Shown piece after piece: positions 11,101-30,376 of a stretch of 64,000 bases of DNA. The stretch comes from Perna viridis (lineage: Eukaryota): assembly GCA_037379345.1 (NCBI GenBank), contig CM074512.1, positions 50,985,597 through 51,049,596 on the forward strand. The letters are read 5' to 3'. How positions within the stretch are numbered: the first letter of the stretch is position 1; each line of letters opens with the position of its first letter. The position numbers and the translations under genes were made by a program. The notes below the pieces were generated by a model. That model saw nothing but the letters and a program-made list of their open reading frames with translations, was not told where the DNA came from and searched no databases.

Positions 11101-14100
11101 ATGCTGTCATTGATTTGCCTTGCATTTTTATATACCACCGTTAACGGTGCTGTGTTACCTTACCAACCTCAGCTTGGAGGTAATCCTGGTGCAGATCCAG
11201 GATGGGCAGACCCAAACAGCCTGGGAGGAGGAGGAAACTGGAACGATCCCGGTGCAACCGGGGGATGGAATGAACCCGCTGGAGCAGGTGAATGGCCTGA
11301 ACCAGCAGCAGGGGGAGGAGGTGGCGGCTGGAACGAACAACCAGCAGGTGGTTGGATGGAGCCAACAGCTGGTGGATGGAACGAACCTGCTGGAGCCGGA
11401 ATGGGTCCAGATGCAGGTGCTGGGTGGAACGAACAAGCTGGAGGAGGGATGGGTCAAGATATAGGTGCTGGATGGAATGACCCGAATGCTCTACAAGATC
11501 CAGGTTTCCCAAGTGGAAATATGCCTATGGATCCTGTAGGTGGAGGAATCGGAGGAAGCGGTGGTGGAGGTGGTGGCCAAGGTGGTAAGGGTGGAAGCGG
11601 TGGTGGAAGTGTAGATATAGGCACCGTTATCTCTGCTCTAGTTGATGCCGTGTTCAACTCCAAACAAGCCGCATCTGGTGGTCAGGCTGCTGATAGTGGT
11701 TGGGGAGGTTCTGGTGGTACAGCTGGTGGACCTGGTGGAGCAGGCGGAGCAGGTGGAGCAGGAAATTTAGGTGGCGGTTGGGGAGATATGGGTGGTGGTG
11801 GAGGTCAAGAATGGCAAGATGCTGGTAATATGGGAGGAGGAGGTGGTGGCGGTGGCGGCGGCGGCGGTGGAGGAGATGTAAACTGGGGAGCAGCACTTGG
11901 AATCGGAGCACCTGCAGGACCAGATATGGGAATGGAAGGCCCTGGAGGACCTGATATGGGCATGGGACCAGCTGATAACCAGGCAGGACCAGGAGGTGAT
12001 TGGCAAAGTGGTCCTAATGATCCGTTTGAAGGAAGCGCTAGTCCTAATGTAGGTTTTCCTCGTAGTGTTGATAATGTTTTCTAGTATGAAATAGTTTATC
12101 TTAGAAATCAGATACCCTTTTTCGGAACATGATTAACTTCCAAGAAAGATATTATTAGTTTGCTTAGAAACAAAAATGGGGGAAAAATACTTTTTACATG
12201 CTAAAGAGAGGAAATAACGCAATATTTGTAAAAATATATTTGTATTTTTTTAATAAACTTTCTTGTAAGGAATGTAAGAAATCAACGTAATTTTTCGTTT
12301 CAAGGATTTACAATCTGCTGGGGGATACTCCGGAAGTGGATACGGACGTACCTATGGTTATGTAAGTACTTCTTTGTTAAAATATTTAGCACGGAAATTA
12401 AGATTATAAAGTTGACATGAATTTATTGTTTTTCTGAGAATATTTTCAAACCATGATTCTTATAGATTTACACGATTTAAGTTCAAAAAATATTATTACA
12501 AATCGTATATGCATCTGGGAAAAACAGTACTTGAATTCTTCTACGTCATGTGCGAAATCTTTTTTTAGTTTTTTTAGGCATATTTCAAACTGATAAACTA
12601 TCAATATTCCATGAATTTTAATTTAGGATAACTTTGTTTTTTTTCAGAAGAAAACATATGAAAAACCAAAACAATATGTAAAGAAATATGCAAAGCCATA
12701 TGTTAAGTCATATGGTAAACCATATGCTAAACCATATTCTAAAACATATTCTAAGCCATATGCTCAGAAATATGCTAAGAAATATGCTAAACCACAATAT
12801 GCCAAACCACAATATGCTAAGCCACAATATGCCAAGCCAAAATATGGGAAATACGGAAAGAAGTATGCTAAACCATATGCTAAGCCACAATATGCCAAAC
12901 CAAAAGTTTACAAGACATATGCTAAGAAGGTCTATGCTAAGGTAATTTAATAACTGTAGTCAATGCTATTGATACGTATTATTTACCAGTTGATTACATC
13001 ATATTTGACTGGTTCATATAAAACATATAATGCATCATTAAGTTATAGTGTAATCCTGTCCATTATGTCTTATAAAAGACTGGTCCATTACGACTTTCTA
13101 AAAATATTCCATGTTACATCATGATCACCATTTAGTAAACAAAAACAGAAGCCAATATAGAAATGTCAATTTCTCATAAAATGACACAGAAATTTACTAA
13201 AAATCATATGCCATTTTAATTTTGAACTGAGAAAATTTATTGATGATGTACATATGGACTTTTAAGACTAGCAATAATTTTTAAACTGGTTGATAAATGT
13301 AAGAAAAAAATTAAGAAATGTGTATTTATTCATAGTAGTAAAGTTATCTATAGAATTATCAATTAGAACATTTATTGTAAGAGATTTACAGGTTTTTGTA
13401 GGTACAATAATTTCTTAATAAGACAGATTGCTTTTATTTATTATCCGAAATTCTATTTTTCCCTTCCGTTTATGATGTGTCAGTGAGTAATTTATATTTA
13501 CCTTCGAAATATACTAGTACATACTTTATACAGTATTGAGTATAAGATAATAGCTGTCTTTACCACTGAGTTATGATAAACATTAATATTTATTTCTTTC
13601 TTTTTTTCAGAAAAGAAAGGTAAGATAAGATAAAGCAAAATCATTATTTTTCATCTTTTATTAACTTAAATGATTGAAAAATATAGCATTGAATAACTGG
13701 TTTAGACAAGTCGGGTTTTGAAAACCCGATACGAACTGAGTACCCTAAGTGTGGACTTGCTTTAAGCAAAACTATTGTATAAGAAGCATAGTTCACAACA
13801 AGGTAAAAACAAATTAAAAAAAAATAAGTACCACTCCATCTAGTAATCATGCAAAATCTGATACATGGTTGGAAAGCCTGCATATTTTTATTTTTGATAT
13901 TTTTTAGAATGCATAAGTAATCAGAAAATTACGTGTGGCTTTACATATAATCTTTGTTTTTTAGAGATATAAATTACATAGAATGTACCGTAGAATTCAA
14001 AATTAAGGGGTATAACCCTGTTAATGACACTAAAATACAATATAAACTGTTAAATTCTTAATGTGAATTTTCTCCCAAGAGCAGACGGATTGCAATGGAT

Positions 14101-14316
14101 AATTATGCATTTCATCATATAAACCTATAAAATAACTTATCAACAAAAATAAAATTATTTAGCTTTTGGAGGTGTTTCATATTTTACAGAATTTACATGA
14201 TTCTTACTAAGACTGCTACTTAACATTTAATATAGAATCGAAAGTAAATATTTTGCATGAAGTTGATGTACGCGTATTTATGGATTTTTTCCTTGTTATT
14301 TCAGGGTGGTTATTAA
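11101..14316 (+). CDS. Cluster gene A: secreted Gly/Trp-rich acidic + Lys/Tyr/Pro-rich basic diblock structural protein, ~439 aa; coding exons 11101-12048, 12305-12361, 12648-12941, 13611-13619, 14305-14316
   Basis: Signal peptide MLSLICLAFLYTTVNGA; all introns phase 0 with GT-AG; exon 3 DLQSAGGYSGSGYGRTYGY; exon 4 KKTYEKPKQYVKKYAKPY...AKPQY...VYAK; microexon KRK; GGY*; AATAAA at 14361. Same exon layout in paralog C and, apart from exon 3, in B. Confidence 0.88.
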
Positions 14317-15054
14317 AGTGACAGACGAAAACAATATCATATTTATTAAATTAGTCTGTAAATAAAGTACTGTGATGCATCAAGAGTGTTTGACATTTTG
14401 TTTTGCTTTAGTTTTTCTTGTATCTTCCGTAGTATTTTTCAATACTACACTATTCAAGATTACACTCTACATGCAATATAACTAACTGATAACAAATCCT
14501 GTTTAGAGTTTATATGAAACATTCTGGGCCATGAAAACAAAAACCTAAATATGGAAGATCAGAAATCATAGTCCGAATACCATGTAAATCAGTGACCTAG
14601 AAAACATCAAAAGGACAATTTGTACTGGTGGGGTGAGGATCTTCAGCTGTTTTAGAAACATCCACTGAGTGGCTAGTGTTGTTTTATGTGTATCAACATT
14701 CAGATAAGACATGTTTTTTATCTAAGCCGGTATCAACTTTTGAGTATGCCTCCTTCCAAATCTAAAAACAAGAACATGTCTCAAACATTTGTGACTTCGA
14801 TATTAATACAGTCGTCAATAGAATGTTAAAAGATTTCATGAAGAATTAAAGGAATTTTCCTTTAGTCACATTAATTATCCATAAGCTTGTAAAGTCTGCC
14901 AATTTTTTAGTCTTTTAATGAGTTTTTTCGTTGAAAACAGTCTAACCTAATAAAATTCTAGGTTTTAAATATGTGCCGCAATAGACAGGTTTCAAAGCTA
15001 TTCCGGAGTAGACTGGTGTTCGTGTAAGAGGTTAGACATGTTGAAAGGCATGTC

Positions 15055-29013: not shown

Positions 29014-29063
<50 letters not shown>

Positions 29064-30376
29064 ATTGAATATAACATTTCACGCTCTATTCAGGAGTTAG
29101 CTGGACCAGGAGGAGATCCTATGGCTGGTGGACCGGGAAGTGCCTATGGTTACGTAAGTAATTTGTAGTTTTATCAAAGCTACAAAATGTGTTTTTTCTT
29201 TATCCATGAATCTGTTTTATAACTTGTTCGAATAATATTTAGAGTAGAGACCCCTGATCATGCACTTTTCGGAAGTAAACAGTGTGATAGTTATTGTTCA
29301 CAGTGTGGTACGAATTTGCCAGAGAACAATTAAGACTAAAATTATTTTAAATGTCAGTTTCTTACAAAATTGTCTTCTCGAGATTTTTCCTCTAAAATGA
29401 TTGTGTTTTAATAGTTTTCGACTACATGTAGTGCCTGTTTAGTTTTCAAAACTTTTTGTCAACTTAGTTTTGAATTATCAGGTATGATGCTAAATGTATT
29501 CCGGTTAAAACTATAATACTATGTTATTTTGTAGCAAAAACAACCATACGGAAAACCAAAAACTTACGGTAAATCATATGGGAAACCTTATGCTAAACCA
29601 TACGCAAAACCACAATATGGAAAACCAAAATATGGAAAACCCCAATATGGAAAGAAGTACGCTAAACCACTGTACGCAAAGGTTTACAAGAAAGTCTATG
29701 CAAAGGTAAGTGCTATAAATAGGTCAGTGAATGTTTAGAAGATAAATATATTTCTACATTACGCATTAATTAATAAGATTAGAGTATACACCTTGGTACA
29801 TCATTCTTAAACAGTTAAAATTTTACAATGATCAGTTGAACTAAGACTGAAGACATAATTTCGAAGTTTGTTTTCTATGAGGCTCAGATTTGTTCATTTG
29901 AATGTTATTTTATATGGAATATTCTATATATCGACTTAATTTTCCATTTCTGGCCATTTACAACAAACCTTATTGATCTCATTAATGGTTTGTTTTTGTA
30001 ATATTTCAGCAAAAAAAGGTAAGTAAATTGCATAACCACGTGACTTATTCAGATAGCAATATAAAAGTAATAGATATTCATAAGTTGGCATTGAGTTTCA
30101 GATTTAATGATAAGAAAATTATTATTATGCATTGATATGACCCTTTATAGAAGTATCATACATGCAAACTAATTCAACTTCAAAAGAACCCTGAAAGTCA
30201 TCAGAAAACCTACCTAAGGATTACAACTTTTTATCAGACAGAAATAGGATTTTCAAAAGGTTCACACCATTTTACTTGACAAAAAACAAGCACTGCAAAA
30301 AATGGCATAATCATACTTTACTTTGTCCGTGGTTTCTAATTACAGTTTTGTTTTGTTTTTCTAGGGAGGATACTAA
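28113..30376 (+). CDS. Cluster gene C: secreted Gly/Pro/Met/Trp acidic + Lys/Tyr/Pro basic diblock protein, ~300 aa; coding exons 28113-28763, 29094-29153, 29535-29705, 30010-30018, 30365-30376
   Basis: Signal MRTLICFAFVFTAVYGA; motif VDIATVITALIDAV; PN|gtatgt; ELAGPGGDPMAGGPGSAYGY; QKQPYGKPKTYGKSYGKPYAKPYAKPQY...VYAK; microexon QKK; GGY*; AATAAA at 30432. Confidence 0.88.
29019..29060. repeat. (TA)21 microsatellite in an intron of gene C
   Basis: Direct inspection. Confidence 0.95.

Follow-up and report, generated by a model that had tools for sequence, protein, structure and literature searches.

The cement of the sandcastle worm operates by polyanion/polycation coacervation, byssal preCols come together when mildly acidic conditions give way to the pH of seawater, and recombinant (AKPSYPPTYK)12 self-coacervates at NaCl concentrations of at least 0.7 M via Lys-Tyr cation-pi contacts (PMC9999432). 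The repeats of mussel foot protein 1 (fp-1) are tandem Lys/Tyr/Pro decapeptides of this kind, e.g., AKPSYPPTYK (PMC9999432), with ATPKPWTAWK as the form in Perna viridis. Molluscs commonly have Lys/Tyr repeats and Gly-rich low-complexity proteins, and charge balance within one secreted precursor is also already known. Here we describe three tandem plus-strand genes, called A, B and C, at positions 11101-30376 of a 64,000-nucleotide stretch of the P. viridis (green mussel) genome (assembly GCA_037379345.1, contig CM074512.1, positions 50,985,597 to 51,049,596 of the forward strand). The whole stretch is referred to as the window, and positions are counted from its first letter. In the products of these genes a long acidic block and a shorter Lys/Tyr-rich block nearly cancel each other in charge. 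The family itself, the two-block design and the near-exact compensation over a three-fold range of block charge appear to be undescribed.

Each gene lies within a G+C-rich, G-skewed island in an AT-rich genome, and the three follow one plan: exon 1 (a signal peptide and an acidic Gly-rich block) is followed by a Lys/Tyr exon, a 9-nucleotide basic microexon and a terminal exon for GGY and the stop codon. In A and C a Gly/Tyr linker exon of 19-20 residues stands between exon 1 and the Lys/Tyr exon; B does not have it, and inspection of the intron ahead of its Lys/Tyr exon revealed no candidate. The mature proteins are 284-423 residues long, and the acidic block, which is rich in Gly, Pro, Ala and Trp and contains 8-11% Asp plus Glu, makes up 60-90% of the chain. 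The first exons are clear paralogues (42-61% identity) and share a PYxP start of the mature chain, a central VD(I/L)xTVIxALxDAV motif and a GPDM...NWxEGPxDPFEG end. The Lys/Tyr exons (98, 26 and 57 residues in A, B and C) consist of 12- and 15-nucleotide tandem units, the repeats of the family being YAKP, QYAKP and YGKP, and they end alike in KPKVYKTY(A)KKVY(A/S)K. A fourth member, the orthologue O (P0002), is present on a 1.7-kb genomic contig (L011) from another sequencing run, with an exon 1, an 18-residue Gly/Tyr linker exon and a 58-residue Lys/Tyr exon.

Charges of the two blocks

A preliminary description of the window had counted charges by hand on the mature chains of A, B and C and had read their near cancellation as selection for near-neutrality. 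The counts were reproduced exactly by script; spliced chains were joined for counting only, and exons were searched singly. In A, the Gly block has 29 Asp and Glu against 2 Lys (-27), the linker is 0, the Lys/Tyr exon has 31 Lys against one Glu (+30) and the KRK microexon adds +3, which gives a net charge of +6. B, which is without a linker, has 20 acidic against 10 basic residues in its front block (-10, with an assembly gap excluded), +10 in the Lys/Tyr exon and +3 in its KKK microexon, for a net of +3. In C the acidic block is -15 and the linker -2 (together -17), the Lys/Tyr exon is +17 and the QKK microexon +2, for a net of +2. The blocks of O, a gene that the preliminary description had not seen, are -18, 0 and +18, an exact cancellation out of sample. 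Before the microexon the residuals of A, B, C and O are therefore 3, 0, 0 and 0, compared with block charges that range from 10 to 30.

Across the four genes the two blocks are correlated in net charge with r = -0.996 but in length with only r = +0.24. The observed pairing of charges is the best of the 24 permutations, 1/24 being the smallest attainable p. Independent contrasts (unit branches, four topologies) gave r between -0.993 and -0.997, a slope of about -1.2 and p of 0.003-0.007 with two degrees of freedom, and all three contrasts point in the same direction. With B left out, r is -0.9998. The correlation of block charges thus held when it was recomputed across homologues with phylogenetic correction (n = 4, O included). 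Simple length scaling was rejected as an explanation, given the length correlation above and the case of B, where the longest Gly block of the family (at least 302 residues) is joined to the shortest basic exon (26 residues).

The genes reach their balance in different ways. For example, the lower acid load of O is due not to fewer repeats but to 10 Arg and Lys residues placed among 28 Asp and Glu inside its acidic block. The front block has 30 acidic and 3 basic residues in A, 28 and 10 in O, and 20 and 10 in B. Therefore, it is net charge that is matched, and not repeat number or length.

It could be argued that two repeat-rich blocks have simply drifted independently, and that their cancellation is chance combined with a pattern picked out after the fact. 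There are only four genes, they share ancestry, no permutation p below 1/24 can be obtained, near-neutrality is common among proteins, and the number for B is incomplete. However, O cancels exactly although it played no part in finding the pattern, the residuals of 3, 0, 0 and 0 are small against block charges of 10 to 30, and the three contrasts agree in direction, with a slope near -1.2 and differing mutational routes. Pure coincidence is now unlikely, and we consider it the least credible of the explanations weighed here.

The gap in gene B has a nominal length of 132 N, or 44 codons; this is a multiple of three and, taken at face value, leaves both flanks in one frame. In alignments the flanks fall, in the same order, on neighbouring parts of A, C and O. 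In those three genes the homologous interval, from the helix motif described below to the first WQ motif, has 28-49 residues and a net charge of -2 to -3. The read flanks of this interval in B already hold 23 residues with a net charge of -4, and because of this a large hidden charge is unlikely; judged by the alignment, the missing letters probably add little. If the gap is given any charge from -6 to +4, the correlation stays at r = -0.956 or stronger.

The fraction of charged residues in the proteins is 0.13-0.18 and the net charge per residue is 0.000-0.014. Sequence charge decoration, which is about -0.5 in shuffled chains, is -1.8 to -15.4 here (for A, -15.4 against -0.43 +/- 0.55). The chains are thus block polyampholytes, with segregated opposite charges and a net charge near zero. 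The computed isoelectric point (pI) is about 4.1 for the acidic block, 10.1-10.35 for the Lys/Tyr tail and 8.5-8.95 for the whole mature chain. The computed charge of the whole chain is +20 to +36 at pH 3, +13 to +25 at pH 4 and +0.8 to +4.5 at pH 8.1.

The exact cancellation in O and the rejection of length scaling support the earlier claim of selection for near-neutrality, and it is likely, with n = 4, that the balance is under selection. We infer that selection keeps the net charge of the complete chain close to zero, at +2 to +6, with a computed pI of 8.5-8.9, which is near the pH of seawater.

Gene models, transcripts and relatives

All introns in the models of the three genes are GT-AG and in phase 0, borders and frames having been checked by script. 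The models of A and B were drawn by homology, and those of C are confirmed by transcripts. The features are as follows.

11101-12048 (+): gene A exon 1, paralogous to those of B and C, with a 16-residue signal peptide and a 300-residue acidic block rich in Gly, Trp, Pro and Ala, net -27; GT donor at 12049
11611-11664 (+): gene A conserved helix motif, VDIGTVISALVDAVFNSK; in C the homologous segment forms the single helix that AlphaFold2 predicts with confidence
12305-12361 (+): gene A Gly/Tyr linker exon, 19 residues, net 0; AG/GT borders, phase 0, by homology to the RNA-confirmed linker of C
12648-12941 (+): gene A Lys/Tyr exon, 98 residues with 31 Lys and 22 Tyr, net +30; 12- and 15-nucleotide tandem units (YAKP, QYAKP)
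13611-13619 (+): gene A 9-nucleotide microexon KRK (+3), modelled on its RNA-confirmed homologue in C
14305-14316 (+): gene A terminal exon, GGY and stop
20491-21447 (+): gene B exon 1, with a 17-residue signal peptide and a Gly-rich block with W-Gn-W runs, net -10 over the letters read; contains the assembly gap
20962-21015 (+): gene B conserved helix motif, VDLSTVITALVDAVVKNK
21041-21172 (no strand): assembly gap of 132 N within gene B exon 1
22036-22113 (+): gene B Lys/Tyr exon, 26 residues, net +10
22592-22600 (+): gene B microexon KKK (+3)
22953-22964 (+): gene B terminal exon, GGY and stop
27904-27927 (+): gene C non-coding first exon (5' untranslated region), placed by locating a loose transcript-contig end in the window; a TATA box, TATAAAAG, lies about 30 nucleotides upstream at 27871
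28104-28763 (+): gene C exon with the start codon (coding from 28113), a 16-residue signal peptide and a 201-residue acidic block, net -15; joint 28763>29094 in three runs
28350-28403 (+): gene C conserved helix motif, VDIATVITALIDAVAQSK; predicted helix at mature residues 66-82
29094-29153 (+): gene C linker exon, 20 residues, net -2; in transcript contigs
29535-29705 (+): gene C Lys/Tyr exon, 57 residues with 17 Lys and 12 Tyr, net +17; in transcript contigs
30010-30018 (+): gene C microexon QKK (+2), CAAAAAAAG; in transcripts it is seen as CAAAAAA between the joints, its final AG being absorbed at 30363-30364
30365-30376 (+): gene C terminal coding exon, GGY and stop, with a 3' untranslated region reaching at least to 30450; in transcript contigs

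Six RNA-like public runs contain 25-31% of the sequence words found in the stretch of gene C, which is about what its exons would lead one to expect. Contigs built over 28000-30450 from three runs of three studies contain the joints 28763>29094, 29153>29535 and 29705>30365 exactly as predicted. They also have CAAAAAA(AG) between 29705 and 30365, and therefore the microexon is part of the gene C mRNA. The depth of gene C is high in the runs of the three studies, but another RNA run of this species, although deep, has no reads of it, and this suggests that expression is tissue-specific. A search for the run accessions found them in no paper. Four non-synonymous allelic differences were found in C; none changes the charge, and they are too few to be informative.

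Two features of the gene C and gene A repeats can be mentioned here. An (AT)24 microsatellite at 29014-29061, in intron 1 of C, is a place where read contigs break. The Lys/Tyr exon of A is also open in a second frame (12688-12945, plus strand), which would give a repeat rich in His, Met, Leu and Asn and results from the 12/15-nucleotide periodicity. C likewise has a second open frame at 29521-29709, and its confirmed splice phase picks the Lys/Tyr frame.

Pattern, exon-1 profile and Lys/Tyr profile searches indicate that the 723-Mb genome holds only the three copies. Exon 1 of C, the least repetitive part of that exon, and P0002 were used in word-based searches of 5.8 billion proteins, and these returned only P0001, which is an open reading frame (ORF) copy of C exon 1, and P0002 itself. 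A profile search of 1.84 billion representative proteins gave two matches, the ORF copy of C exon 1 and P0002 (E = 5e-33), with no glycine-rich noise, and a cluster look-up contributed nothing beyond an allele of C. Pfam has no family for any of the exons. In the PDB sequence search the acidic block had no match, and the matches of the Lys/Tyr exon were at chance level. No relative was found in a JGI metagenome scan with the helix motif, and no paper in a motif search of the literature.

The closest relative of O in the P. viridis genome is gene A (58-65%, with an identity of 64%), and its intron is not alignable; by these comparisons, O is the A-like gene of another, clearly diverged species. 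The best reading is that A, B and C form an orphan family restricted to the Perna lineage, without Pfam, PDB or other database relatives in the searches made.

These searches also bear on the possibility that the proteins form a matrix of shell mineral or periostracum, like the shematrins or the lysine-rich matrix proteins (KRMPs). The acidic block would then bind calcium or carbonate mineral, and the Lys/Tyr end would bind chitin or acidic partners and be tanned by tyrosinase; neutrality would be a by-product, or would keep the protein soluble in the extrapallial space instead of serving self-coacervation. Some likenesses point this way. The W-Gn-W runs of gene B resemble the XGnX repeats of shematrins, and all members finish with a basic cluster and Tyr (KKK-GGY), which recalls the RKKKY-type ends that shematrins have. 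The shell proteome of P. viridis includes Gly-rich orphan proteins (PMC6641155), and KRMPs join a Lys-rich basic domain and a Gly/Tyr domain (PMC4498902). However, the profile search described above recovered no shematrin, KRMP or other mollusc protein. The shell-proteome supplements do not contain the motifs of the three genes, and the Gly-rich shell unigene listed there (Gly 30.9%, Ala 13.8%) fits their composition poorly (PMC6641155). Such a role would also leave the exact cancellation unexplained, and we regard it as quite unlikely.

The rest of the window contains several other features. Between A and B, at 15059-16568, there is a minisatellite whose 27-bp unit is repeated about 56 times (68% matches); it has several open frames, Arg/Tyr-rich or Ile/Ser-rich, and looks non-coding. 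A dispersed element of about 480 bp is present in two copies that are 90-99% identical, one upstream of A (7697-8173) and one upstream of C (26086-26558). Both carry the same minus-strand ORF of 111-117 residues (MCPRWWNGVPLACYML...), and the element is probably a young mobile one. Directly downstream of C, on the opposite strand, 31120-34308 holds an ankyrin-repeat-like gene whose C-terminal tail is acidic. Farther on, also on the minus strand, a single-exon ORF of 332 residues at 39982-40980 has two TIR-like stretches (YHAFFSYQH... and FYAFFAHGP...) and resembles a tandem-TIR immune adaptor of the kind expanded in bivalves; broken reverse-transcriptase-like retroelement ORFs follow at 44162-45239 (minus strand).

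Proposed storage and condensation, and a precursor alternative

The structure prediction fits a mostly flexible chain. AlphaFold2 gave low confidence for exon 1 of C, except for one helix at mature residues 66-82 (predicted local distance difference test 81-92), which is the conserved motif. The acidic block is predicted to be disordered apart from this one conserved amphipathic helix.

In our view the three genes encode secreted, largely disordered two-block polyampholytes whose neutrality is maintained, so that the neutralised Lys/Tyr tail could be stored densely and condense upon secretion; we would give this reading an even chance of being correct. The anionic block would neutralise the fp-1-like Lys/Tyr tail, either in cis or between chains, and the neutralised protein could be packed densely and be able to condense by self-complexation or coacervation. 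At the acidic pH of a gland the carboxylates would become protonated and the chain would be a soluble polycation. On return to seawater pH neutrality would be restored, and this would drive condensation. Lys-Tyr and Lys-Trp cation-pi contacts could hold the condensate together at high salt, and the conserved helix could serve as a self-association site. The proposal is in keeping with what has been published on fp-1 repeats, on byssal assembly triggered by pH and on worm cement (PMC9999432). It also fits a general result of theory and experiment, namely that polyampholytes self-associate most strongly when they are blocky and neutral. The preliminary description had proposed a one-chain version of the complex coacervation of sandcastle-worm cement, switchable by pH or salt; coacervation is a plausible and physically reasonable reading.

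Several points weigh against this reading. The charge comparison has four data points and three independent contrasts, the pattern was noticed post hoc, and the value for B leaves out the unread gap. Genes A and B are without transcript support, and the contig of O stops before the microexon, its last exons being missing. Overall charge density is low, as the fraction of charged residues given above indicates, and the two blocks are very unequal in density. The ionic strength of seawater weakens purely electrostatic coacervation, and phosphorylation, other modifications or proteolysis could shift the real charge. In addition, the family motifs do not occur in the supplements to three papers on P. 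viridis, which cover the foot genome (PMC7971044), the byssus proteome (PMC6508894) and the shell proteome (PMC6641155).

The main rival is that the protein is a charge-neutralised precursor, in which the acidic Gly-rich region is a pro-region that masks the cationic Lys/Tyr peptide while it is made and stored, and is cleaved off at secretion; the working product would be the Lys/Tyr peptide alone, an adhesive primer, a coating or an antimicrobial peptide. That propiece and mature peptide correlate negatively in net charge is known as the 'charge balance hypothesis' (PMC4571063, PMC7073735), and the correlation here is far tighter. Dibasic residues are present at the block junctions of A and O (Y|KK) and of B (N|RR). 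However, the junction of C has no dibasic site (GY|QKQ), and Lys is so frequent all along the tail that dibasic sites there carry little weight. The acidic block is 4-10 times as long as the tail and has conserved motifs and a helix of its own, which is beyond the needs of a simple mask, and the tail has neither a Cys framework nor an amphipathic antimicrobial design. We consider the precursor explanation rather unlikely.

If, as we prefer, the chains are stored neutral and condense on secretion, a further step can be proposed. A chain selected to be isoelectric in seawater might be a built-in coacervate, the first single-chain counterpart of the two-component cements, in an orphan family confined to green mussels that could be tuned by gain and loss of repeats and by substitutions. 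This is a tentative proposal, and to us it is possible but doubtful. If the balance is selected, the family is a natural experiment in polyampholyte design, with copies whose blocks differ three-fold and sum to near zero, and one in which sequence evolution is tied directly to net charge, a physical variable that controls phase separation. Materials scientists would gain a one-component, gene-encoded model for underwater condensates and adhesives that are switched by pH, and the 'charge balance' rule of antimicrobial-peptide precursors would then also apply to structural proteins of low complexity. In addition, an unannotated, highly expressed orphan family joins the secreted proteins of the green mussel.

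Comparison with known systems

The precursors of alpha-defensins, cathelicidins and frog antimicrobial peptides share with A, B, C and O a single secreted chain with anionic and cationic segments, whose charges vary inversely with each other among paralogues and between species (PMC4571063, PMC7073735). In cathelicidin and frog precursors, however, r is about -0.3 to -0.4, compared with -0.996 and near-exact cancellation here. The mussel blocks are long, low-complexity repeats (200-320 and 26-98 residues) and are not related to these precursors in sequence. They also have no Cys framework and no clear cleavage site, KK or RR being found at the junctions of A, B and O but not of C.

The cement of the sandcastle worm, Phragmatopoma californica, resembles the mussel family in that opposite charges meet in a secreted marine material, and the polycations of the worm are rich in Gly, Lys and Tyr (PMC9999432). 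There is no homology, and the designs differ: in the mussel one chain carries both charges, whereas the worm uses separate, highly charged proteins. The mussel anion is low-density Asp and Glu (8-11%), while that of the worm is high-density phosphoserine, and for the mussel family coacervation is a proposal.

The Lys/Tyr exon has the same palette of Lys, Tyr, Pro and Ala in short tandem repeats as fp-1, whose recombinant repeats self-coacervate at the salt level of seawater (PMC9999432). However, its repeats are tetra- and pentapeptides (12- and 15-nucleotide units) in one exon of 26-98 residues, fused to a large acidic block that cancels their charge. The whole-chain pI of 8.5-8.95 lies below the value of about 10 by which fp-1 is recognised; only the Lys/Tyr exon, at 10.1-10.35, reaches it. 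P. viridis has an fp-1-type gene elsewhere, on contig 15 (G000:C15:21038547-21039320, minus strand), with ATPKPWTAWK and APPPAWTAWK decapeptides. In this array the PKPWTAWK pattern has 15 matches at 30- and 60-nucleotide spacing, and its translation and the published Pvfp-1 repeats ATPKPWTAWKAPPPAWTAWK are almost identical.

Shematrins and KRMPs of pearl oysters are likewise secreted, rich in Gly and of low complexity. Their similarities extend to runs of the XGnX type, a module rich in Lys, stretches of Gly and Tyr, and a basic C-terminal end with Tyr as its last residue. No sequence relationship is detectable, and domain order and size differ. Only gene B has W-Gn-W runs; A and C have GW(N/Q)(D/E)P units and shorter Gly runs. 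A KRMP has about 100 residues and an N-terminal Lys-rich domain, whereas the mussel proteins have 284-423 residues and their basic block is C-terminal, behind the acidic one. Both oyster families are basic overall and not charge-balanced.

Finally, synthetic and model block polyampholytes, like charge-patterned disordered proteins, have segregated opposite charges on one chain and a net charge near zero, as do A, B, C and O. The mussel proteins differ from the synthetic chains in that they are natural secreted proteins, with very unequal charge densities in the two blocks and with Trp and Tyr as aromatic stickers.

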